Source: Syncephalis fuscata S228
Lineage: Eukaryota > Fungi > Zoopagomycota
Assembly: GCA_025786725.1 (NCBI GenBank)
Contig: JAHLTZ010000003.1
Coordinates: forward strand, 434,001 to 498,000
Length of the DNA: 64,000 nt
Direction: 5' to 3'
Shown: positions 2,204-41,882 of the stretch, piece after piece
How positions within the stretch are numbered: the stretch's first letter is position 1
Layout: each line of letters begins with the position of its first letter
The notes under the pieces: model-generated
Databases searched by the model: none
Seen by the model: the letters and a program-made list of their open reading frames with translations, nothing else
What the model was told of the DNA's origin: nothing
Translations under genes and position numbers: made by a program

Positions 2204-3874
2204 ATGCGTGGAACAAATAGGCTAGCACTGTCGCTAGCTATCGTGATTGTTGGTGCTTTCCATACTTATACTAATGTTGTATACTGTCTACAAGCTTGTA
2301 AACAAATACGACAAAGACAGGAAATTCGCACATTAACGCAAGGGCAGCGAAATAGTTTTTTTAACGCTATCCGCCAGTTACAATCAGGTGCTAAACCAAC
2401 CAATTATGACAGGTAAGTGTATTGCCAATAGTTGGAATTCATAATTAATCGATGTCTTTTGTAATACGCTTTTAAATACAGATTTGTCGAAAAACATTAC
2501 CAGGCGCGTATTTCGGCCCATGGGTGGCCATGGTTTCTTACCTGGCATCGGGTATTTATTCGTGACTTTGAACAAAGTCTTCAAACTATTGACGACAACG
2601 TCATGCTTCCTTACTGGGTAATTATTTGGCATAAGTATAATCAACACACGCGTTTAAAGTCTTTATTTCTTATTTAGGATTGGTCTTATGACTCTCAAGC
2701 ACCTGAAATGTCGCCGATATTTAAAAACAACTGGTTCGGTGGTAATGGACGTCCTAGTGATAACTGTGTTGTTGACGGGCAATTTGCCTCGTGGCAGCCT
2801 TCTTATCCAAATGTTCATTGTCTGCGTCGCAAATGGGACCAAGGAAGCGCTATTAGCGCGTTTCACTCTCCAGAGACCATCAAGGCAATTGCTCACAACT
2901 CGACGGGGTTCGACCAGTTTCGCAAACAGCTTGAAGCGCCGACACATGGCCAGGTACACAATAATATAGGTGGAGATATGCCATCGATGTACAGTCCAAA
3001 TGAGTATGTGTGAAATAGTAGCTGCAATAATGAAACAAATACACGTATCCGGCTAACTTGCTTTATTAGTCCGCTATTCTGGGTGCACCATGCTTTTATT
3101 GATAAAACCTGGTATGAATGGCAGCGATTACGACCCGAGAATGCTAAATCCTACGGGGGCCGTAATGCAGATAACACACCAGCCAATATTAATGATCGTC
3201 TCACACCTTATCCGTTGAAGGTTGCGGATGTACTTGATACGCGCAATCTTTGCTATACCTACGCTCCATTCCGTGATACTCCAGTTCACCGGCGACGACG
3301 TGGCCTTGTATCGGATTTGCAGGCTACAGCCTATTCGGCCACCGGCACCAATCCTATTAATATGGCTGAAGTCGATGGCCTTAAACTACCCGAAGTGATT
3401 ACCAAAGCACTACCGATTAGTGTGGCCGGCATCCTGGATACACCTTCGTTTGACGATCGCTCAGAAATAATGGCACTACGGGACTGCAAGCCATTACCTG
3501 AACCATGGCTTCAAATGAATGGCTTAAACGTCACCCAGGTACGACATACCGAAACGATGATCCGTGGCGTGGTAAAACGGATCAATCTGCTGCCCGACTA
3601 CATTTCGCCGGTATCGCTTATTGCGCAACCGCGGCTACTTGGTGCACTCGCTGCTCGAAACCACACGTTTACAGCGACAAAAGGAGATCGGCAATGGGTA
3701 GTGACGGTTGCTACGGATGCCTTGGGGAAGGCCGATGTGGTAGGCACTGTCGCCAAGGTGCGCGAATTGCTTGGTTTGCGGCAGTTGACACAGGGCAAAA
3801 GTACGCTTAATGGGTTGACAGGACTTATAGGCGCCGATGGAACTAGCCAGCTTATAAGTAACTATGGAATATAA
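2204..3874 (+). CDS. Secreted tyrosinase-like protein (TYR2); exons 2204-2412, 2482-2617, 2678-3003, 3070-3874
   Basis: Signal peptide. CuA HYQARISAHGWPWFLTWH, CuB LEAPTHGQVH..DPLFWVHHAFID, LCYTY, RRRR site, C-terminal module. Three GT-AG introns restore the frame. Confidence 0.93.
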
Positions 3875-4174
3875 ATATATCATTAGAACTATTATATATC
3901 ATTAAGAATAGTGACAAAATATGAAATGTAATATATGCGTGTGTACTTGATTCAGTAACAAGTAATGATGACATAGTTTAATTAGTTAATTAGTTATTTA
4001 ATTATCTAGTTACTATATGGTAATCATGGTTTATTAGATGACGCAAACTAGCAATGTTGGTTAATGAACATAAATATAAGTAATAAAAAAGTTAGAGCTA
4101 TTTACTTTGTTAATGGTAGTCCGACTTTTTGTTAATAATAGAAGTGCTTAATTGAATTATTAGCTTTATACATC

Positions 4175-5663
4175 ATGTATCCATCTAAGGTTTTATCTAT
4201 CGGTATTATAAGTCATTTTTTATCTCTTGTTTAGTATTATTCTGTGTCAAGCTGGCAATAGCAGAGAGATGTAATAGTATTCGAGAACGACCCGAAATTC
4301 ATACAATGAGCTTAAAGCAGCGCAACGATTTCTTTCAAGCCATAAGAACATTAAAAAAAGGAGCACGGCCATCAATTTATGATAGGTACAAACTGCTTAT
4401 TGGTGTTTTTGAATACTCATTGATTTGCATAGGTATGCCAAAATGCACTATGACCATCGAAATATTGGCCATAATTCACCGCAGTTTTTCCCGTGGCACA
4501 GAGCATTTCTTCGAGAGTTTGAAAAAGAGTTGCAAAACGTTAATCCGACCGTTATGCTTCCTTATTGGGTAAGAATGGATGCAATGACGATCAAAAACAG
4601 AGGACTATAACAACAACAACGTGATTATAGGATTGGTCTGGTGATTCTCAAGCGCCGGAATTATCAAGAGTATTTTCTGCTGATATGTTTGGTGGCAATG
4701 GGCGTGATGACGACTCTTGCGTCGTTGATGGTCAGTTTGCCAATTGGCAAATTATTTATCCAACACGCCGATGCCTTAGCCGAAGCTTTGACCAAGGCAA
4801 TCAAATGTCGGCTTTTTCGTCACCCGAGGTCATTAAAGCATTGCAGAACTCTGCAACCAACTATGATCGATTCCGTCAGTTACTCGAAGTAAAGCCTCAT
4901 GCACAGATTCATAATGCAATTGGTGGCGATTTTCAAACAATGTACACGGCAAATGAGTAAGTATTATGCAACCAGCAAGCAAATCTAGCTTTTAATTTAT
5001 TTTTACTAGTCCATTGTTTTGGCTGCATCACGGTTTTATAGACAAAATATGGGCTGATTGGCAAAAAATACGTAAATCAAATGCCCGCTCTTACGGTGGT
5101 CAAGATGCTAATGGCGTATCGGCTCGAACACAAGACAGTATTACTCCGTTTAACTATCGGGTTAGCGAAGTGCTTGATACGCGCGAGCTTTGTTATGAAT
5201 ATGGTCAATCGTTTCTGAGCCGCCATAATGAAGAACGTACAAAAGCTATAGCCAATCTTCCGCTACCATCTACGCCGCGTAATGTGGCCGTCTGTGTAGG
5301 ACTCGAAATCTTGGGACAGCAAAATATATCGACAATGGCTTTGCCAGAATCAAGCGATCGGTCCGAGCTTGTTGCGCTACGAGATACGGCGCCGATACCT
5401 GACGAGTATATTGCAATGAATCATTTTAAGAAAAGACCGTTTTAGAAGCGGAAAAGCTTGTGCGATTTTTTACTCGACAAACTAACGCTAATTCAAATTA
5501 CATCTCACCAGCAGCACTGCTTAAACGGCCTGAGTTGCTTGAAAAAATAGCGCAGACTCACGACGTGCTATCGATCACCACCGGAACTACACAAACCTTT
5601 TTTAGATCTAGTGATATTTTTGAACAAAAAGCAACTAGTAATCGACTTTCAGATTGTACATAA
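4175..5663 (+). CDS. Secreted tyrosinase-like protein (TYR3) with two frameshifts (~4190, ~5434); introns 4386-4432, 4569-4630, 4957-5009
   Basis: Cu[19 protein letters not shown], Cu[23 protein letters not shown]. The C-terminal module is split across two frames. The ATG at 4175 is out of frame with the downstream hydrophobic signal segment. Assembly error or young pseudogene. Confidence 0.8.
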
Positions 5664-6370: not shown

Positions 6371-7875
6371 ATGTGGAAAATTCTTTTATTAGTGACGGGC
6401 ATTGTAGAACTAGCCGTTCTTCCGTCCGATGTTGCCGGACAACGGTCGTGTTCTATCGGAGTACGACAGAGTGTTACAGATCTTTCGGAAGGAGACCGTA
6501 ATGCTTTTTTCAATGCTATTCATCAACTGCAGCAAGGTAGTCGGCCTAATCGATACGATGAGTAAGCAAAAACATTCAAAGCAATTTTATAGCATTTTAT
6601 TGATCAAGTAATAATAGATTTTCAAGAAAACATATAGCTGCAGCAATTCCAGCACACAATAATCCCAAGTTTTTGCCATGGCATCGTGCGCTAGTTTTTG
6701 AGTTTGAAAGAGCTCTACAAAGCGTTAGCCCCGGAATGATGGCTCATTATTGGGTAGGACAACAAGTGGATTATCACTGATGACAATTAACTTATATACT
6801 GCATTATTCTTATTATAGGAATGGTCTAGCGATTCACAAGCACCTGAGAATTCCCCTGTCCTTAGATGGCTCGGTGGCAATGGACGACAAGGCGATAACT
6901 GTGTTTTGACCGGTGAATTTGGCAGCTGGAGGCCATACTATCCAAATGGTTCGCCACATTGCATGAGTCGCAAATATAACAATGGCGACAGAATTACACC
7001 ATTTTCTAGTCCAGGCCAACTCAACAGATTGTTTGCTTATACTGATTACGACCAATTTCGTGCAGAATTTGAAGGTGTCGATCATGCGCAGATTCATAAC
7101 AATATTGCTGCGGAATTCTCGACTATGGCCAGCCCAAACGAGTATGTTGCCTGATACTTGAATAGCAATCATACTAATATAAACTGCTGTTTCTAGTCCA
7201 CTTTTTTGGATGCACCACTCTTTTGTTGACAAGGTCTGGGCACAATGGCAAAGCAGAGGCAATAATCGTGGAAAATATGCTGGCGGTCCAGCGCAACTTA
7301 GGGAAACTCTTGCAGAGCTTCCTGGCCATACAGTTGAGTCCGTGCTAGATATCAGTAATCTGTGCTACACCTATTCAAAGTTTGGATCTACTGGCCAGTT
7401 ATCTCGTCGTGACAGCAACGACGAAGGCCTTGACACTAACACTGGTACCACGAGATCAAAAGTCCGCAGAAATCTATTGGATATTATCTCTATGCATACT
7501 ATTACACTTGCTGAAGAAATATCACTGGTACCGGTTGCCGACCGATCTGAACTGTATAAACTACGAGATATTCATCCTGTTTCTGAAAAATATATTCGTA
7601 TGCATCACGCTGACGTTGCAACAATTCGTCGATATGAAGAAAAGGCACGTGAAGTTACACGCAAGCTTAATAGAACACCAGGCTATGTATCGTCGGCTGC
7701 TCTTATCAATCATCCAGAATTGCTTGAACCGCTTGTATCAAAGCAATCGACCTTTACTGCTACGCATGGCAAGAAGCAATGTGTGTTTGAAATGCCAAAA
7801 GGTGAAAAAGATCAAAGCATGGTGGATGCTTTGATTAGTAAGGCTAAGCTGTCGCTCAGTATAGAGCTCAGATAA
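6371..7875 (+). CDS. Secreted tyrosinase-like protein (TYR4); exons 6371-6561, 6618-6753, 6819-7141, 7197-7875
   Basis: Signal peptide. CuA HIAAAIPAHNNPKFLPWH, CuB FEGVDHAQIH..DPLFWMHHSFVD, LCYTY, SRRD site, C-terminal module. Confidence 0.92.
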
Positions 7876-9160: not shown

Positions 9161-11001
9161 ATGGCAAAACTTTATGGCATTCTACTTGCCACCGCAATTA
9201 CTCTACTCCAACTTGGTTCGTCGGCCGATGGTCAATTAACAAGATGTCCACAAATCGTGACACGACGCGAGATTCGTTCTTTAAGCGATCAGCAACGAGC
9301 CAATTATTGGAATGCAATTAAACAACTGCAATCGGGCAAACAGCCAACTCAATGGGATAAGTAAGTTAATTGTATTTGTTATACGCAATAGTTTTGTATT
9401 TATTAACTTATTATTATCATTATTATTATTATAACACAATTAGCTTCGCATCTCAACACTGGAATGTTCGAAGCACTGCCCATGGATTCCCGCAATTCTT
9501 TCCCTGGCATCGCGCATATCTTCGTCAAATCGAACTAACATTACAAAAAATCGATTCATCCATCGTTATACCTTATTGGGACTGGTCGCTAGATTCGCAA
9601 GCACCTGAAAAGTCGCCCATCTTTCAAGCTACCTGGTATGGTGGCAATGGCCGGTCAAGCGATAACTGTGTTACAGATGGCCAATTTGCCAACTACCGCC
9701 CATACTACCCTCAACCCCACTGTCTTCAACGCCAATTCGACTCTGCTCCCGTAATGTCGGCTTTCTACTCGCCCGAAATGCTTGTGGCCATCCGGGAGAA
9801 TGCAAAAAACTATCAAGATTACTGCAACCAAATTGAGGTCCCACCACATGGCCAGGTCCATGTAAACATTGGCGGTGACATGCTTACTATGTACAGTCCC
9901 AATGATCCTATTTTTATTTTGCATCACACGTTTATCGACAAATTATGGTCAGATTGGCAAGCAATGTCGGCTAAAAATGCACGTGATTACGGCGGCACGA
10001 ACGCAAATGGAAGGCCAGCAGTGGTCACCGACGTTCTTGCACCTTGGACTTATACAGTCAACGACGTTCTCGACACACGTAATCTTTGCTATGTATATGA
10101 ATCGTTGACAACAACGCCTCCAGCACCTGCTCCTGTGCCACAACCTGCTCCTGTGCCTGCTCCTGTGCCACGTCCGGTGCCAGCACCACAACCTGTGCCT
10201 GCTCCTGTGCCACGTCCGGTGCCAGCGCCACAACCTGTGCCTGTGCCTGCTCCTGTGCCACGTCCGGTGCCAGCACCACAACCTGTGCCTGCTCCTGTGC
10301 CACGTCCAGTGCCACCACAACCTGTGCCTGTGCCTGCTCCTGTGCCACGTCCGGTGCCAGTGCCTGCTCCTGTACCACGTCCGGTGCCAGCGCCAGCACC
10401 AACGCCAAGTTCAGAAAATCCATGGAATTCATGGTTTAACAGATTCCAGCCAAATCGCTGGCGCTTCTGGAGACGTGCCGATGAACCAGCTGTTGACGCT
10501 GCATCACCTTCATCCAACAGCCCTGTTGTAGTGACCCAGCCAATTACCACATCTAATACATCTTTATTGCTGCCATCCGCCACTGATCGTACCAACTTGG
10601 TTGCTCTTCGTGCTTGTAATCCTTTGCCAGACCAATGGATTATGATGAATAACCACCAAGTAGCAGCGGTTCGCGCCCTTGAACAAACACTTCGAACACT
10701 AACAATCAATCTTAATCAGCACAGCTCGTATATTTCCCCGGCATCGTTAATTAATCGTGGTGACTTGTTGGCCCGTCTTTCAAGCACTACAAAGCAATTT
10801 GTTGCTAGCAAATCTGGCGTTAAAGTCAACGTTTCAGTCAAACAAAACGTCAGTGGTCTTTCGGTGGCACAAGCCATCTATTCAGAAGTCTACCGTCAAA
10901 TGAACTCGCTTCCACGCATGAGTAATTCGGCACAAGCGCTGCAAAATGCGCGCAGTGTTGTTGGCAAAGGCGCATATCAAAATGTTGCACCTCCATCATA
11001 A
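9161..11001 (+). CDS. Secreted tyrosinase-like protein with proline-rich linker (TYR5); exons 9161-9360, 9444-11001
   Basis: Signal peptide. CuA HWNVRSTAHGFPQFFPWH, CuB IEVPPHGQVH..DPIFILHHTFID, then a (PVPAPVPR)n linker and the C-terminal module. One intron. Confidence 0.93.
10117..10405 (+). repeat. Coding minisatellite (~42-48 bp unit, QPVPAPVPRPVPAP) in TYR5
   Basis: Repeated caacctgtgcctgctcctgtgccacgtccggtgccagcacca with variants, about six copies. Confidence 0.9.
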
Positions 11002-12444: not shown

Positions 12445-13891
12445 ATGAAGCAATCTTTTATCTATTCGCTACTGTCCTTGCTTGTAGGCTCCAGCATGAT
12501 CTACGTCTGCGAGGCTCAAAATTGTGGTCCTCTTCAAGTGCGTCAAGATATTCATGATCTTACCGATACCCAACGCAATGCATACTTCAGGGCCATCACT
12601 ACACTACAGTCAGGGTCCCGACCAACCCGATATGACAAGCTATCTCAAATGCACTATGACGCCAGAAATACAGCCCATGGTTGGTCATGGTTCTTCCCTT
12701 GGCATCGAGCTTATTTGCTTGAATTCCAGAGACAATTACGAACTGTTGATTCTAGCATTGTCATTCCATACTGGGACTGGTCGGTCAACTCCCAAGCACC
12801 CGAACAAGCATCCGTTTGGCGCTCTGACTGGTACGGTGGCAACGGCCGATCAGAAGATAAATGTGTTGTAAATGGCCAATTCCGTAACTATAAGCCAATG
12901 TATCCACAGTCTCATTGCCTGCAACGATCATGGGATAGTGATACCAGAATATCTGCATTCTACTCTCCACAAGCACTTAGCTCGCTCATTGCTACAAGTA
13001 CCACTTTTGATCAATTCAGACAACGGTTAGAGTCAGTACCACATGGACAAGTACACGTTGCCATCGGTATGGATATGTCGACAATGTACAGTTCTAATGA
13101 GTAAGTCGACTAAATATACAAATTGTATTTTATTAATCTGGCTACTATGACAACATTAGTCCTCTTTTTTTCCTTCATCACGGATTTATCGACAAGCTAT
13201 GGGCCGACTGGCAAGCCAGCGCGCCGGGCCGCGATACCGCCTATGGAGGAAGAAACGCAGGCGGAAGCGCTGCCACAGTGAACGATATTCTAACGCCGTT
13301 CAATATTCCTGTTAGAAATGTGCTTAAGACACGGGATCTATGTTATGTCTATGCTCCACGTAGAACTGCGAGCAGAAGCATGATACAGTCAAATGCCAAT
13401 AATGCAGTTAGCATTGAAAATACCGCTGCAAATAGCAACACTACAATAACAGGGCTACTTCAGATGCCGTTGCCAAAAATACCACTGTTGTTGCTGTTCC
13501 TTCAACTGCCTCAGTCCTCCCAGCACCTGACGATCGAACGGAACTTGTAGCGCTTCGCTCAACTAAGCCTGTCCCCGAATCATGGCTACGGGCCAATAAC
13601 CATGACGTCGGCCAGGCACGTGCCACCGAATCGGACTTGCTCCAGACGACAAAGAAATTTAACGAAAACTCCAACGAGATTTCATCTGCTGCTCTTATCA
13701 ACCAAGAAGATGTACTAAAGTCCTTGGCGTCATCTGCAAAACAATTTACTATCACCAATGCTCGCAAGCGAGTTAACATTAATCTTAAAAATAGTGAAAG
13801 CTTGGTCGACGCCATAAAGAAAGCGGCCAGCTCTGTCATGCGCGTGTTAAGCAACGCGCACATTAGCAATCCGTTTCAAGTAGCATACTAA
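12445..13891 (+). CDS. Secreted tyrosinase-like protein (TYR6); exons 12445-13100, 13160-13891; frameshift near 13440-13500
   Basis: Signal peptide. CuA HYDARNTAHGWSWFFPWH, CuB LESVPHGQVH..DPLFFLHHGFID. The C-terminal module (DDRTELVALRSTKPVPESWL..) lies in a shifted frame. Confidence 0.88.
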
Positions 13892-14876: not shown

Positions 14877-16551
14877 ATGTTTCACACAAAACGACTATTC
14901 AAGCTTGGCCTACTTTCGATAACCGTTTTGCTTTTGTGCAGCGGTATAATCAGATCTACAAATGCGCAATATCGTGGTTGTAATAAAATAGCTAAAAGAA
15001 GAGAAATTCGTACATTGTCCAGTCGAGAAAGACAAACGTATTTTAATGCCATCAAGCTTATGCAATCAGGCCCATCGCCAACCTTTTACGATAGGTAAGT
15101 AATAAAACTAAAATTAACTGCAGCCACTTTAATTAATATTATTTAATATTTAGTTATACCATTCGACATTTTAATCCATCTAATTTTACTCATGGATTTC
15201 CACAGTTTCTTCCTTGGCATCGAGCATTTATACTCGACTTTGAAAACCAGTTAAAAAGAATTGACGAATCACTTACTATTCCTTATTGGGTCAGTACGCA
15301 CATAGTATATAAAAAACGACTAATACTTTAAAATTTATAGGATTGGTCCTACGATTCACAAGCACCTGAACTAGCGCCTATCTGGCGATCCGATTGGTAT
15401 GGCGGCAATGGCAGAGATAGCGATAGTTGTGTTGTCAATGGCCAATTTGCCAACTGGCATCCATTCTACCCGGAGCCGCACTGTCTGCGTCGACGATGGG
15501 ACAATAACGATACTATATCCGCCTACTATTCCCCAGAAATGATTCAATCAATTAAAAACAATGCACATGTGTTTGATGAGTTTCGACAGCAGCTTGAGGC
15601 GCCTCCACACAACCAAGTCCATGTTTCAATCGGTGGTGATATGCCGACACTATACAGTCCTAATGAGTAAGCAATTAATACAATACGTCTTTAATAGCTA
15701 ATATCTCTTTTATTTATTTGCTGTCTAGTCCTATTTTCTGGAGCCATCACGCGTTCGTTGATAAGCTCTGGGCAGAATGGCAGGAAATGGCACAGCCCAA
15801 CGTTATGTCGTACAACGGCATCAATGGAGACGGCACACAAGCAAAGCTTTCCGACCAACTTCTACAATTGAACTACAGTGTTGCGGATGTAATGGTTCGA
15901 GAAAAGCTTTGCTATGAATATGTTCCGGCACCATGGGAGGCAAACTTTCCAGGCAAATCAAAGGGCCGTGGTAATAATAATGGAACACCACATGCTCGAC
16001 GCGACATCGACAATAGCACGGATAGCGCAGCAAGTTCTGGATACACCTTTACGCAGACGAACATTGGCGACAATGATGGCACTCCCAACGCAAATGATCG
16101 TCACGAGCTTTTGCAACTTCGCGTCCCAAATAGCCTACCGGAGGCATCAATTCTTCGTAGTCATATGAAGGTCGAGGACGTACGTAGAGCAGAAGAAATT
16201 CACCGCCAGACGATATATGAGCTGAACAAACTCTCGAATTACATTTCGCCCGCTGCACTTATCAACCGACCAGAATTTATGGAAAGTTTGACCGGCCGCG
16301 TCGACAGATTCACCGCAACTGATGATAAGCAGCAATTGCAGATCCACTTGCCAAATAAAACGCCATTATCGCAAAAGGATATTGGCGATCTTGTCAGGCG
16401 GATTTATAGCCGTGGCTCAAATCAAAGCGTTTCGCAAAAGGCCGACGCGGATATTGAAACTACTAGCACTGCATCAAGCGACATTGATAAGATTATTGGC
16501 ACGGGCACATGGGAGCGTATCTGGTCAACGATATCTGCCAAAAAATCCTAA
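14877..16551 (+). CDS. Secreted tyrosinase-like protein (TYR7); exons 14877-15094, 15154-15289, 15341-15666, 15729-16551
   Basis: Signal peptide. CuA HFNPSNFTHGFPQFLPWH, CuB LEAPPHNQVH..DPIFWSHHAFVD, LCYEY, ARRD site, C-terminal module. Confidence 0.92.
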
Positions 16552-21941: not shown

Positions 21942-24059
21942 ATGCGATTGACTTCAACTATCCTTATTGCTGCAGCTTTGCTGTTGGCTGCCACCAACGT
22001 TCAGGCTGATACATGCAGCTCGATTCGCCAACGTCGTGAATTCCGTACTCTATCGGATGCTGAGCGCCAAGCTTACATCTCGGCCATTAAGACACTACAA
22101 AACTCTCAAAATCGCTCAAAATATGATGCGTATGTCCAACGTCACGTAGATGTCACAGCTTATGCACACGGTAACTCCCGTTTTCTTTCATGGCATCGTG
22201 CCTACATTCGTGCCTTTGAAAAAGATCTTCAAAGCATCAATAGTTCTGTGATGCTTCCTTATTGGGACTGGGCCTACGATTCGCAGGCTCCAGAAAAATC
22301 GATTGTTCTTTCGAGCCAGTACTATGGCGGTAACGGTGATAGCAAAAAAAGTTGGTGTGTTCCCGATGGCCAGTTTGCTAGCTGGAAGCCAAAAAATAAC
22401 TACAACTGCATCGTTCGTTCATACAACAACGGCCAAGGCTCTCACATTCCTGCCTTCTGGGGCTGGGAACCTATTCGCTCGGCTGTATTTTCTGCCACTA
22501 GTTACGATCAATTCCGTAAATCGCTTGAAGGTCCGCACGGTAACGTACACAACAACATTGGCGGCCAATTTTCGTCTATGCGCAGTCCGGATGATCCTCT
22601 CTTCTGGTTGCACCACGCATTTGTTGACAAATTGTGGTCTGACTGGCAAAATCTAAAAGCAGCCAATTTCCGCAGCTACGGTGGTCAAAACGGCGATGGT
22701 AGCACTGCTCGTGCCACCGATAACCTTGATTATGGCTACACTGTGAACGATTTGTTTGATACGCGCAATCTCTGCTACACCTACGCTCCATTCGATGGCA
22801 CTGTTCCGCCTGTCGTCACTCCACCATCGACCACGCCACCACCATCGACCTCGACTTCGACATCGACATCGTCCAGCTCGCCATCAGCCACTGGATCGTC
22901 TTCATCAAGTGCCACGTCTACTTCGAGCGGCTCTCCATCAGCCACTGGATCGTCTTCGTCAAGTGCCACGTCTACTTCAAGCGGCTCTTCATCAGCCACT
23001 GGATCGTCTTCATCAAGTGCCACGTCTACTTCAAGCGGCTCTCCATCAGCCACTGGATCGTCAAGCTCTTCGGCTACTAGCACATCGAACTCAAATGGAT
23101 CAACCTCCACTAGCACGTCGACTTCTACAAGCACGTCGACCTCTACTAGCACGTCAAACTCGAATGGATCATCAAGCGCTACTAGCACCTCAACCTCCAC
23201 TAGCACGTCGACTTCAAGTGGTTCGGCCAGCAGCACTGCTACCAGCACTCCAACACCAACTTACACAACGGTTATTCCGCCATACACCAACGGTACCATT
23301 CCTAACGGCGGTACTTACGTGAATGTTACCGTTCCTGGTGTCAATTCGACCACAGTCACCAACTCTACCTATGGTCCAGACTACGATGATCGTACCAACA
23401 TTATCAATATCCGTCAGCCACGTCCATTGCCTGAATCCTGGTGCCAAATGAATCACTTGAACGTTGATGACGTTCGTCAAGTTGAAAACAATGCTGCCAA
23501 GGCTATCGACCAATTCAATCACTTGCCAGGTTACATTTCGGACAGTGCTTTGGTCAATCACCCTGACGTTCTTAAGGATTTGGCCAAGGAAGGCGCCAAG
23601 TTCAATGGCTACGTTGGTAATCAGAAGATTCAGATCAACTACGACTCTCAGAATCCAGACGCTGCTGTTCAGGATGTCCGTTCCAAGGTCGTGAATGTAG
23701 TCCAACAAGTCTACAAGCAGGTCAGCTTTGTTTATCCACAGGTCGTGCAGAACATTATCAACGCTGTTGATGTGTTCAATGGCGGCAAAAACTCACTTCC
23801 AATCTATTCTGGTAACAACAACCAGACTGCCGGCAATGAAAACTATGGCGACGAAGACTGCGAAGAGCCAGCTGAGGAGGATTGTGATGATGAGCCAGCC
23901 GATGAGGACTGTGATGAGGATAACGCTAATGCTCAAGTGCCAGCTCCAGCTCCAGCTGTCGTCACTGAGCCATGTGACGAAGATGGCCAAGTACCAGCTC
24001 CAGCTGTTGTTCCATGCGATGATGCTAACAACACCACCACCACCACTCCTACTTACTAA
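21942..24059 (+). CDS. Intronless secreted tyrosinase-like protein with Ser/Thr-rich linker and acidic Cys-containing tail (TYR9)
   Basis: 705-aa ORF with signal peptide. CuA HVDVTAYAHGNSRFLSWH, CuB LEGPHGNVH..DPLFWLHHAFVD, mucin-like linker, C-terminal module, EDCEE/EDCDD tail. Confidence 0.95.
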   Translation: MRLTSTILIAAALLLAATNVQADTCSSIRQRREFRTLSDAERQAYISAIKTLQNSQNRSKYDAYVQRHVDVTAYAHGNSRFLSWHRAYIRAFEKDLQSINSSVMLPYWDWAYDSQAPEKSIVLSSQYYGGNGDSKKSWCVPDGQFASWKPKNNYNCIVRSYNNGQGSHIPAFWGWEPIRSAVFSATSYDQFRKSLEGPHGNVHNNIGGQFSSMRSPDDPLFWLHHAFVDKLWSDWQNLKAANFRSYGGQNGDGSTARATDNLDYGYTVNDLFDTRNLCYTYAPFDGTVPPVVTPPSTTPPPSTSTSTSTSSSSPSATGSSSSSATSTSSGSPSATGSSSSSATSTSSGSSSATGSSSSSATSTSSGSPSATGSSSSSATSTSNSNGSTSTSTSTSTSTSTSTSTSNSNGSSSATSTSTSTSTSTSSGSASSTATSTPTPTYTTVIPPYTNGTIPNGGTYVNVTVPGVNSTTVTNSTYGPDYDDRTNIINIRQPRPLPESWCQMNHLNVDDVRQVENNAAKAIDQFNHLPGYISDSALVNHPDVLKDLAKEGAKFNGYVGNQKIQINYDSQNPDAAVQDVRSKVVNVVQQVYKQVSFVYPQVVQNIINAVDVFNGGKNSLPIYSGNNNQTAGNENYGDEDCEEPAEEDCDDEPADEDCDEDNANAQVPAPAPAVVTEPCDEDGQVPAPAVVPCDDANNTTTTTPTY
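22881..23240 (+). repeat. Coding 54-bp repeat (PSATGSSSSSATSTSSGS) followed by (ST)n runs in TYR9
   Basis: Unit starts at 22881, 22935, 22989 and 23043. Confidence 0.9.
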
Positions 24060-27804: not shown

Positions 27805-29512
27805 TTAAGCTGAGGAACCAGTAGAAGGATCGACAGAATACACGTTATCAAGATCGATAGGAACAGTGCTTGAATCGGAGTAAGTATAGACATCGGTTGA
27901 ATTGGTGCCGGACAATTCTTGTTGCTTCATTTCGTCAAGTGCCGCCAACTTGGTATTAGCAGCCGTAACCAATGCCGTTACATTAACTTGTCCATTTTCG
28001 GCGCGAGGCACGCTAACAGGCACCTGGGTATTGCCTCTTGCAACGTAAACGGTGGACTGTTCGGCTGCAACAACCGTCAGTAGTTCTTGATTATTGATTA
28101 TAGCAGCAGGTGAGATATAGCCTGGCTGCTTATTAAGACGAATAACTAGCTCTCGTAACATGGTCTCTGTTTCACGAATAAGCGTTTTGTTGAGATTTTG
28201 TCGACGGATAATTTCCTCTCTAAGCGGTGTGCAAGTACGAAGACTAATGATATGCTTGCGATCAGTCTCTTCAAGATCATCCGCCTGTCGTTCTTCTTTG
28301 TGCTGATAAATCTCGTCAATGTCCTGCTTGCTAGAACGCTGCCCTTTTGTCTTCCATTTAATTAGTTTGTGCTCTACAAAGGACGATACAATGTCATGTA
28401 TAGTGTGGCCAATGCTCACACCGATGCTAGCCTTGAGGTTACTGCCGATGCTGGCGCCCACGTTAGCACCGATGCTATTGCTGATGCCGGTGCTAATACC
28501 AAACAAGCTATGGTCCAATAGACCTCGACGACTGAATCGGCTATTATTGTTTTCATTGCGATTGGCTAGTCTGTCATAGACGTAGCAGAGACTGCGAGTG
28601 TCCATAATATCACCAACGCGTACATTAAACGGAGTAAGCACATCGTTAATGTTAGCACGTGAGTTATCGGCGTTACGGCCACCGTAGTCCCTAGCATTTC
28701 GAGAACTACGTGCTTGCCACAGCGCCCATTGCATATCAATAAACGAGTGATGGATATAGAAAATTGGATCATTGGGGCTATAGGGCGTACCCATATGACC
28801 GCCAATATTAGCATGGACAAGATTGTGCGCGGGAGATTCAAGTCTCGCATTAAACTCGGCATAGTTTGCCGCTTCATCGGCAACTATTCTAAGTGCCTCA
28901 GGCGAGTAGAAGGAACCTAGACGGGACCCGCCATTAAAACGTCGCTGAAGACAGTAAGGCCGAGGAAAATGTGTTCGCCATCTTGCAAGTTGGCCATCCA
29001 TGACGCAACCATCGCTCCTACGGCCATTGCCGCCAAACCAGGTTGGTGAAAAGATGATATCATTGTCGGGTGCTTGTGAAGTAACCGACCAATCCTATAA
29101 TAAACAATAAACAGGAATACATTAATATTGAATCAATAAAATGGTAACTGCAATAAATAGAACTTACCCAATAAGGAAGCATCACACTAGGATCGATGCG
29201 TTGTAATTGGTATTCAAATGATCGGATAAACAAGCGATGCCAAGGTAAAAACCATGCCGTACCATGGGCTCTGGTCTGGTATTGGGAGTGTAGATTAGCA
29301 AACGCATCGTAGCTGTTTGGACGTGGTAATGATACCAGAGTGCGAAGAGCGCTGAAAAAAGCATCCAACTGTTGCCGGTTCAGCCTTTTAATATCCTGTC
29401 GCACACGGATGCTACATCCTTGAGCATCGACTGATGGGATGCCAGTGTCAACACCGGCAAATAGACATGTAGCAACTGCTAATGTTGCTGTTAAGAAGCG
29501 AGAAAACCGCAT
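27805..29512 (-). CDS. Secreted tyrosinase-like protein (TYR10); exons 29512-29168, 29094-27805
   Basis: Signal peptide. CuA HSQYQTRAHGTAWFLPWH, CuB LESPAHNLVH..DPIFYIHHSFID, LCYVY, SRRG site, C-terminal module. Confidence 0.93.
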
Positions 29513-39557: not shown

Positions 39558-41882
39558 CTAATGATGCTTTTGAAGCATAAAAAGTCGAAGTGCTTGACGC
39601 AATCGTTGATTGAAGCCATGTAGCATGGGACGTAGTTCATCTACTACTTGCACGGCCCAGCCTTGTCCATAGCGAAGTGCATCAGACGCTGTGCGTAGAA
39701 TATCATCCTGTCGCGCTAATAACGAGGCAGGTGATATGTAATTTTGTAATCGATTGACAGCGCCAATTGTGTTGCCTAAACGAGCCTCCACTTGTCGTAC
39801 ATGCTTTTTATTCAATCCGTTCATTACGATGTAGTTATCGGATAGTGGTCGAGGCGTTTTAATTTGAACCAATTCGGGCGTTCTACTAGTCAGTCGTGTT
39901 AGCCAGGTCGACTTTTTATCAAGTACTGTTGCCTTATAAACGGCATTCAGATATTGGCGTTCATTTTCATTGCCATTAGTAACAAAATCTGGCCAGTCAG
40001 ATGTATTTAAAGAATCATTTGAAAGTGGACTCAAAGCACTATTATCTTGCGTACTATCATCTGTGCTATTAACGGCCACTACATAGACGGATTTAGTAGG
40101 CAATGCCCATTTTACATTGGTTTTAGCAGCACCACTATTGTTGAATGGATGTTTAGCAGTACTATCGCTATTAGTACTATTGCTGCTATTGTTGTAATGC
40201 TCATTTTGCCAAGAATCTCTTAATATGCGCAGTATGCGCGGATCCTTATCGTCAAAAATCAATGATTCTTGCAGAGTGCTATTACCAGTTGAGGCAGAAG
40301 TCACCATTGTTTGTTGTATTACCTTACGGACTGATGAATTTGGCACATAGTCAATATAGCGATAGCATAGACCGGGTCCTTCAGTGTTGAGCGCATCGGA
40401 ATTCAACACGTTAAACGGCTCAACGGTTGAGTTAAGATGGCGTGGCTCGTAAGAATCGTCGACAAAGCCGCTAAAGTCGTTAAGATTTTTTATGCTACGT
40501 TTCTGCCATTGCCACCAAATCATGTCAACGTAGGCATGATGAACCCAAAAGATTGGATCGGACGAGCTGGCCATTGATGTGAATGAGCCGCCAATGCCCG
40601 CATGGATGGCACCGTGGGGCGGGCCTTCAAGCGTGGAACGTAACTCGTCATATGTTTTTGACGAAACGATAATAGCATCAATAGCCTCAGGCGAGTAAAA
40701 AGCACCAAGACTATTACCTTCATCGTAGCTACGTGTAACGCAAGTAACACTCGTTGAGTCTTCACCATCGACGTAAAGTGACCCCCAATTGGCAAAATAG
40801 CCGGTAGATAGACAGCCACCGCGCGATTGATCGCCATTACCGCCAAAGAATCGATTGGATAGCACCTCAGAGGCATGTGGTAATTGTGAATCAATGCTCC
40901 ATTTCCAGTATGGCAGTATAACATTTGGATTCTGTTTCCATAACGCTTCTTGGAATGTAGCAAGATAAAGACGGTGCCAAGTAAGAAAATCAGGTAGACC
41001 GTGCGCATTGTTTGCGTACTTTTGATGTACAACAGCAATTTGGTCGTAAAAACTAGGTGAAGGTCCAGCGTGCATACCACGCACAGCATTAACAAAATCG
41101 CGCCATTCTTTAGTTGTAAGCTGGCGTATTTCTTTACGTTCGACAATTTGGCCGTTACATGGTCGCTTTATGTTTAATAACTCAGTTACTATAGCCTCTG
41201 GCGTAAGTAAAGATATTGTTTCTATAGTAGGTGTAGATGTAGGTGTTGTAACTGCAGCTGTCTTTGTTTCTGTTTCCGTTGTTGGTATAAAACGAGAGGT
41301 AGTTGGTAAACTTTCTATTATTAAAGTCGATTTTACCGTATTTATTAATGATGTTGTTGTTGTTGTTGTTGCTGTTGGTTGAAGTGTTGCTGGTTGCGAG
41401 GTTGGTAATGGCGTTGATAGAAGTGATATAAAATCCGGTTTATCAACTACTGGTTCTAGTATAGTTCTATCAAGATTTTGTAATAATGAATCCAGTAACG
41501 GTTTAGTCGGTGCACCTTTACTATATGAAAATAATAATGGTACATTATCACTTGGTACATCGTCACTTGGTACATCGTCACTTGATAAACCATCCACTTC
41601 AGTATTTGTATCCGATGTAGTATCAGAAGATGAATCCACCGACTCTTCTAACGATTCAGTCTCATCTTCAGGCGGATCAGAAGATAATAATTCATTATCT
41701 TGTTGACGTTCTAGCGTCAAATGTTGATAGATTCGATGGCTATGCAATATGGGATCTATTTTTAAATTTGCAACGGTCACATCCGGTACCACCACAGCAT
41801 TGACTACAAATGTAATATTTGCTAGTAAAAGCAATATTGATAATTTACAAAAATCATATTCGGACCATAAAGACAACTGCAT
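39558..41882 (-). CDS. Intronless secreted tyrosinase-like protein with long N-terminal extension (TYR11)
   Basis: ATG at 41882, hydrophobic signal, ~210-aa acidic/Thr-rich extension ending KR-PC. CuA HQKYANNAHGLPDFLTWH, CuB LEGPPHGAIH..DPIFWVHHAYVD, LCYRY, divergent C-terminal module. Confidence 0.92.
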   Translation of the reverse strand: MQLSLWSEYDFCKLSILLLLANITFVVNAVVVPDVTVANLKIDPILHSHRIYQHLTLERQQDNELLSSDPPEDETESLEESVDSSSDTTSDTNTEVDGLSSDDVPSDDVPSDNVPLLFSYSKGAPTKPLLDSLLQNLDRTILEPVVDKPDFISLLSTPLPTSQPATLQPTATTTTTTSLINTVKSTLIIESLPTTSRFIPTTETETKTAAVTTPTSTPTIETISLLTPEAIVTELLNIKRPCNGQIVERKEIRQLTTKEWRDFVNAVRGMHAGPSPSFYDQIAVVHQKYANNAHGLPDFLTWHRLYLATFQEALWKQNPNVILPYWKWSIDSQLPHASEVLSNRFFGGNGDQSRGGCLSTGYFANWGSLYVDGEDSTSVTCVTRSYDEGNSLGAFYSPEAIDAIIVSSKTYDELRSTLEGPPHGAIHAGIGGSFTSMASSSDPIFWVHHAYVDMIWWQWQKRSIKNLNDFSGFVDDSYEPRHLNSTVEPFNVLNSDALNTEGPGLCYRYIDYVPNSSVRKVIQQTMVTSASTGNSTLQESLIFDDKDPRILRILRDSWQNEHYNNSSNSTNSDSTAKHPFNNSGAAKTNVKWALPTKSVYVVAVNSTDDSTQDNSALSPLSNDSLNTSDWPDFVTNGNENERQYLNAVYKATVLDKKSTWLTRLTSRTPELVQIKTPRPLSDNYIVMNGLNKKHVRQVEARLGNTIGAVNRLQNYISPASLLARQDDILRTASDALRYGQGWAVQVVDELRPMLHGFNQRLRQALRLFMLQKHH

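Follow-up and report, generated by a model that had tools for sequence, protein, structure and literature searches.

Some type-3 copper proteins have C-terminal elements by which the copper site is inactivated or covered prior to their removal; examples are the C-terminal extension of Verrucomicrobium spinosum tyrosinase and the beta-sandwich domains PF12143 in plant PPOs and PF14830 in mollusc hemocyanins. In the long fungal PPOs, such as A. oryzae MelB and A. bisporus PPO4, the shielding domain (PF18132) also stands at the C-terminus, after the catalytic domain's Y-x-Y end and a linker; its proteolytic removal is expected, and a conserved aromatic residue in one of its loops is a possible placeholder. 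The plant, mollusc and long fungal PPO domains are mutually homologous, and a C-terminal shielding domain is a hallmark of 'type 2' PPOs (PMC11803259). Streptomyces tyrosinase has a small partner on a separate polypeptide, the caddie protein MelC1 (PF06236), with copper-relay His and Met residues. The caddie protein is SH2-like. It places a Tyr in the active site and, once the enzyme has matured, departs (PMC11608171). Fungal short PPOs (type f; AoCO4 and TtPPO) are defined by having no C-terminal domain, and these two secreted enzymes are processed by Kex2/furin at the N-terminal end (PMC6238066).

The Syncephalis fuscata tyrosinases described here carry, after the catalytic domain, a module that matches no plant, mollusc or long-fungal-PPO domain by sequence or fold. 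We see about an even chance that this module is an unannotated C-terminal pro-domain of secreted early-diverging-fungal tyrosinases, cut off by a kexin-type protease. It resembles the PF18132 shield in its position after Y-x-Y and a linker, in its expected proteolytic removal and in a conserved loop aromatic that may serve as placeholder, but it has no sequence match to that domain, no CxxC and an alpha+beta rather than a beta-sandwich fold. Like MelC1 it is the small partner of a tyrosinase with a very similar catalytic domain (Z 28); unlike MelC1 it is fused to its enzyme, lacks any conserved His or Cys and resembles the caddie in neither sequence nor fold. The host enzymes share with the short PPOs their secretion and a similar catalytic core (Z 27), yet all 28 tyrosinase loci in this genome bear the module and the Kex2 cut of the short PPOs is N-terminal. 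The host looks closest to the bacterial tyrosinases and short fungal PPOs, which are placed in PPO type 1, not type 2 (PMC11803259).

Within the catalytic domain H38, H46, H55, H167, H171 and H193 are invariant or nearly so, and both the six copper-binding His and the four-helix core that characterise PF00264 are present. The earlier note had likened this domain to the fungal short PPOs. The similarity holds, with the catalytic model aligning to A. oryzae catechol oxidase at Z 27.1 and the sequence at E 2e-17, but bacterial tyrosinases are at least as close: B. megaterium tyrosinase aligns at Z 29.4 over 242 residues (rmsd 2.0), Streptomyces tyrosinase at Z 28.2, and the bacterial sequences reach E 1e-29.

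Syncephalis fuscata is a zoopagomycete mycoparasite. In the first 42 kb of the window, by which we mean the whole stretch of 64,000 nucleotides that was analysed (contig C223, 434001-498000, of a 29.4-Mb assembly), eleven tyrosinase genes stand in tandem; their introns are short and the spacers between them AT-rich. Two of these genes correspond to public models annotated as Syncephalis fuscata hypothetical proteins, TYR4 to P0005 (100% identity) and TYR7 to P0003. For whole proteins the analysis used these two models and the unspliced TYR9 rather than joined exons of the spliced paralogs. TYR1 is partial at the window edge and its module falls just beyond; the remaining ten contribute the following features.

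2205-3874, plus strand: TYR2 gene in four exons, with signal peptide, CuA, CuB, linker and module, as read from the sequence and its open reading frames
3437-3841, plus strand: TYR2 module, profile E 2.9e-37, AlphaFold2 pLDDT 92.1; 3452-3640 is the conserved core
5332-5597, plus strand: TYR3 module, seen as two partial matches in different frames because of a 1-nt frameshift near 5440
7516-7872, plus strand: TYR4 module, profile E 5e-36; full-length model of P0005 with pTM 0.89
10561-10980, plus strand: TYR5 module, profile E 3.9e-39
13505-13873, plus strand: TYR6 module, with Glu in place of the conserved Tyr and a frame change upstream in the linker
16072-16512, plus strand: TYR7 module, profile match; gene model P0003
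19714-20076, plus strand: TYR8 module, profile E 3.2e-30
23358-23762, plus strand: TYR9 module, profile E 5.4e-44; the gene is unspliced, 21942-24059
27922-28293, minus strand: TYR10 module, profile E 4.3e-30
39684-39887, minus strand: TYR11 module, the core alone (profile positions 12-79) followed by a divergent helical tail, E 3.9e-18

The block, first seen in TYR2 as the in-frame translation of 3452-3640, is found in all ten module-bearing paralogs of the window, after linkers too divergent to align. Its internal spacing is fixed: in a motif scan the distance from the D-R motif to Y/E-[IV]-S is exactly 144 nt (48 residues) in TYR2, 4, 5, 6, 7, 8, 9 and 10 and 143 nt in TYR3, the difference being the 1-nt frameshift, and TYR11 has the block with a variant start. 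The strings that the earlier note gave for TYR5, 8, 9 and 11 occur in the sequence, and convergence after very different linkers, as described there, is borne out. In the genome-wide search the window copies match the profile at E 5e-44 to 4e-18, a similarity far beyond chance. The wider claim that all ten complete paralogs share the block needs qualifying, for ten carry it but only eight copies are intact, the exceptions being TYR3 and TYR6. Similarly, the proposed length of about 65 residues describes a conserved core, and the unit is longer: conservation in the nine-copy alignment reaches about 130-140 residues (nine of the ten copies), taking in past the core a helix, a beta-hairpin and two more helices.

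The TYR3 frameshift is consistent with a gene in decay. In TYR6 the frame changes within the linker (13445-13550) where no intron is visible; the copy could be in decay, or the assembly could be wrong there. In P0014, a TYR6-like protein that is intact, Gln stands at the position of the conserved Tyr.

The module comes after the catalytic domain's Y-x-Y end and a variable linker of at least 36 residues. Its order is an extended arm (D-R-x-E-L-x-x-L-R-x-P-x-P-L-P-E-x-W), a short helix, a long helix (R-x-x-E ... L-N) and a G-Y-[VI]-S-P loop, after which the long form adds a helix, a beta-hairpin and two helices. Conservation across 101 aligned modules stands at 100 for Asn56, 93 for Arg21 and Glu45, 92 for Ser63, 91 for Arg42 and 86 for Asp13, then 83 for Tyr61 (with Phe a further 9), 80 for Asn34, 75 for Trp30 and 58 for Met33. 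Position 61, aromatic in 92 of the 101 and replaced by Glu in TYR6 and Gln in P0014, lies within the G-Y-[VI]-S-P loop, the best conserved loop of the module and the one with which the short form also ends. The module has no CxxC, and no Cys or His is conserved across the 101 sequences. Since such ligand residues are lacking, and Met is found in 58%, the Met-Asn/His copper relay that had been suggested by analogy with the caddie finds no support.

Modelled alone with AlphaFold2 from the 101-row alignment, the TYR2 module is predicted with confidence (pLDDT 92.1, pTM 0.82) as an arm, helices at 28-33 and 38-56, a 13-residue loop containing G-Y-I-S-P, a helix at 71-78, a hairpin at 83-96 and helices at 107-117 and 127-149. 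The predicted fold is therefore alpha+beta, with five helices and one hairpin, and its terminal helix is long and amphipathic. The expectation of a probably helical domain different from the CxxC-bearing, beta-rich shield agrees with this model, which is largely helical.

This fold has no counterpart that we could find, and the description of the module as unrecognised holds at the levels of Pfam, PDB sequence and structure. Pfam-A hmmscan of nine window modules gave no match at E<=10, with PF18132, PF12143 and PF14830 among the families covered, so that no characterised domain of the fungal tyrosinase C-terminal kind is matched at that threshold, and PF00264 is the sole precomputed domain on the relatives in the protein collection. 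Among PDB sequences no chain falls below E 0.16 with either the 9-module or the 101-module profile. For the module model Foldseek returned E>=1 throughout, VIA-align reached a best Z of 3.0 with none at Z>=4 among 48,161 chains, and ESM Atlas searches on features and on shape brought no lead (TM<=0.35); neither caddie nor beta-sandwich shielding domains are among the module's fold matches. Weak SH2 rows in Foldseek (E 1.7-3.7, TM below 0.2), of interest for the SH2-like nature of the caddie, were rejected as insignificant. A search of the full-text literature likewise found no description of the module.

How the module sits on its enzyme can be predicted from the full-length TYR4 protein (P0005), for which AlphaFold2 with a 45-row alignment gives pLDDT 88.6 and pTM 0.89, the module itself lying at 92-98. 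By our estimate a pTM of 0.89 for a protein of 250+130 residues implies a confidently fixed arrangement of the two domains, and on this measure the module is predicted to pack against the catalytic domain. Only residues 252-266, which hold an S-R-R-D site, fall below pLDDT 50. In structural alignments of the full model the aligned range extends to residues 326-347, inside the module, for every listed chain with a shielding domain (hemocyanin units, latent abPPO4, BtTyr), and ends at about 250 for the listed chains that have none. These ranges, which are not a contact map, faintly suggest that the module lies where the shields lie. Mean-field DCA of 85 full-length relatives (Meff 83) gave a noisy signal in which a clique of subfamily columns prevailed; a few inter-domain pairs show sensible covariation, catalytic Glu88 (D-S-Q-A-P-E) with module Arg302 and Arg309, and Val/Ile196 with Leu/Ile308, and are not relied on.

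Among relatives the shortest linker has 36 residues and the median is 66; those in the window measure 55 to about 200. Of 122 linkers 78 contain [KR]R, where composition-preserving shuffles give 37.8 +/- 4.3 (maximum 56 in 2000), and in 56 linker sites Leu stands at P4, as kexin prefers, from a background of 5.4%. Six of the ten window paralogs (TYR2, 4, 5, 6, 7 and 10) have a dibasic linker site, and the linkers of TYR3, 8, 9 and 11 have none. Candidate sites in the window are as follows.

3290-3301, plus strand: R-R-R-R in the TYR2 linker, a candidate kexin site from its sequence and the family-wide enrichment
7405-7410, plus strand: S-R-R-D dibasic site in the TYR4 linker, within the residues modelled at pLDDT below 50
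10471-10476, plus strand: W-R-R-A dibasic site in the TYR5 linker, from sequence
15997-16002, plus strand: A-R-R-D dibasic site in the TYR7 linker, from sequence
28525-28530, minus strand: S-R-R-G dibasic site in the TYR10 linker, from sequence

The site is unevenly distributed in the family. Sixteen relatives, among them P0059, P0063, P0064, P0077, P0092, P0125, P0132 and P0140, have a hydrophobic tail resembling a GPI signal after the module, and they look like a surface-anchored sub-architecture. A linker site occurs in three of these 16 and in 75 of the remaining 106 proteins. As a separate observation, the public model P0002 (S. plumigaleata, the TYR9 ortholog) lacks the whole Ser/Thr-rich linker present in TYR9 and P0001, which was probably removed by the annotator as a false intron.

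In the 29.4-Mb assembly, 28 module copies (from 30 profile matches) face 28 PF00264 loci, and each sits on the same strand as one tyrosinase locus, 0.2-1.1 kb downstream of it (28/28). Searches with the module profile and PF00264 found neither a stand-alone module nor a module-less tyrosinase in the assembly. Two pairs of tyrosinase loci on separate contigs (C13:231816 with C73:4074, and C23:3878 with C113:358911) agree exactly or nearly so in profile score and in the length of their reading frames. These probably represent duplicate haplotigs, leaving perhaps about 26 distinct genes at the 28 loci.

Beyond this genome, the nine-sequence profile matches 268 clusters at E<=1e-3 and 130 at E<=1e-10 among 1.84 billion representatives. 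Named matches come from Syncephalis fuscata, S. plumigaleata, S. pseudoplumigaleata, Thamnocephalis sphaerospora, Entomophthora muscae and Massospora cicadina, most of the rest being metatranscriptome or Logan contigs. In a local set of 151 proteins (150 listed profile matches plus P0001) the tyrosinase domain is present in 102 and absent from 49 of the matches listed. We rejected these 49 as stand-alone proteins, as they start inside linkers or at C-Y-x-Y, or are truncated or fused models; one of them is the S. pseudoplumigaleata 'WD40' model, which has its linker in common with a full tyrosinase. On the question whether the module ever occurs without a tyrosinase domain, no copy in the genome does so, and the matches elsewhere that lack one look like fragments or truncated models.

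Two forms of the module can be told apart among 169 module-bearing proteins of the local set, a long form in 134 and a short form in 30. The short form, of about 65-70 residues, ends soon past G-Y-x-S-P-A-A-L, often 3-30 residues from the C-terminus, and is found in Entomophthora, Massospora and the chytrid Globomyces (47.8 bits). The arm and helices alone are matched more weakly (15-34 bits), at the right position, in tyrosinases of Calcarisporiella, Batrachochytrium, Conidiobolus, Entophlyctis and Podochytrium; since the E-values refer to a small local set, we regard these matches as probable. The short form and these weak matches elsewhere point to the block of about 65 residues as an ancient core.

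The conservation of the module, its one-to-one linkage with tyrosinase, the confident fold with no known family and the enrichment of cleavage sites are observations; docking, which we take from pTM, cleavage and the role of pro-domain are what we infer from them. That role, put forward in the earlier note, fits the kexin-site enrichment in the linkers together with the confidently predicted two-domain model, and the N-terminal Kex2/furin processing of AoCO4 and TtPPO offers a precedent (PMC6238066). As a pro-domain the module would accompany the enzyme through the secretory pathway, aiding its folding, holding it inactive, or both, and a kexin-type protease would then sever it at Leu-x-[KR]-Arg in the linker. 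That the G-Y-[VI]-S-P loop plugs the di-copper site is only a hypothesis. Counted against a pro-domain are the four window paralogs whose linkers have no dibasic site (TYR3, 8, 9 and 11), the replacement of the Tyr by Glu in TYR6 and Gln in P0014, and the fact that secreted short PPOs of Dikarya function without any C-terminal domain. In the relatives with a GPI-like tail, mostly devoid of a site, the module would remain attached, and a permanent domain fits them equally well. Such a permanent accessory domain of the mature enzyme, which would support its structure, bring about oligomerisation or hold it to the cell surface or a substrate, is a reading we regard as possible though not probable; any cut in the linker would then leave an assembled two-chain enzyme. 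The TYR4 model is that of a confident compact two-domain protein, the module of the 16 tailed relatives stands between enzyme and putative anchor, and a long amphipathic helix terminates the module, all of which suit this reading, as do the linkers without a dibasic site. It is the anchored variants lacking a cleavage site that keep it alive. Leu-x-[KR]-Arg enrichment in the non-anchored majority, however, is hard to explain if separation serves no purpose, the module has none of the Cys-rich or aromatic-rich features of known carbohydrate-binding modules, and the short form retains the arm and the Tyr loop although hairpin and terminal helices are missing from it.

A fused, caddie-like copper chaperone, which would hand copper to the apo-enzyme through Met/His and then depart as Streptomyces MelC1 does, appears improbable to us. 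No fungal enzyme stands closer to the catalytic domain than does the caddie-requiring Streptomyces tyrosinase (Z 28, E 1e-28), and a Tyr is conserved in the loop. After its module TYR9 has an acidic tail (23763-24056) of repeated Cys flanked by Asp/Glu, an arrangement seen in ten of the 169 module-bearing relatives, TYR9 included, which could be a metal-binding appendix. Against a chaperone, the module itself has no conserved His or Cys and the Met of its M-N motif is present in only 58%; MelC1 is absent from the PDB profile matches at E<=10 and from VIA rows at Z>=2; and entries for B. megaterium tyrosinase, the closest structure, have no caddie chain, unlike the Streptomyces entries. B. megaterium tyrosinase loads copper unaided. 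That the block is no real domain, arising by chance similarity, low complexity or the wrongful joining of a downstream gene, can hardly be credited, and we consider it refuted: module and catalytic domain share one open reading frame in unspliced TYR9 and TYR11 and one transcript contig in TYR2, E-values go down to 5e-44, the 268 clusters reach distant fungi and the fold is confidently predicted. Returning to the pro-domain, we advance a fuller version of it only tentatively. Early-diverging fungi may have evolved their own alpha+beta latency and maturation domain for tyrosinases, independently of the beta-sandwiches of plants, molluscs and Dikarya. In it the G-Y-[VI]-S-P loop would act as a plug in the manner of the caddie Tyr, and release by kexin in the Golgi would couple activation to secretion; the site-less GPI-anchored variants would be latent surface enzymes and the short form of 65-70 residues the ancestral minimal plug.

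In Zoopagomycota the tyrosinases rank with the most expanded secreted families. They serve as an indicator orthogroup for the secretome of the phylum and average about 48 copies in Entomophthoromycotina; the papers that report this expansion do not mention the module (PMC9391592, PMC10079182). PPO types d and e are described as mainly zoopagomycete, secreted and uncharacterised, with nothing on their C-terminal domains (PMC11803259). Should the module be a second, unrelated C-terminal domain of this kind, control of phenol oxidases by C-terminal pro-domains would have arisen more than once. To our knowledge none of the expanded Zoopagomycota tyrosinases has been characterised. If our reading is correct, there is a new domain family to annotate, with a fold that has no detectable relative among solved structures, and anyone expressing these tyrosinases would know the probable end of the mature enzyme. 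The module is relevant, too, to the use that mycoparasites and insect pathogens make of melanising or quinone-forming enzymes.

A transcript of TYR2 can be followed in one public run, probably of RNA, in which a 3269-nt contig, the one transcript contig that was found, has introns 1 and 2 removed at GT..AG and continues unbroken through the module. The same contig retains the third intron (3004-3070, GTATGT...CTAAC...AG), which brings in a stop ahead of the last CuB histidine; either intron retention or RNA not yet spliced could account for it. It also extends about 1.6 kb beyond the TYR2 stop (3875-5500), towards or into TYR3, an extension that could reflect read-through, a joined assembly or DNA in the run.
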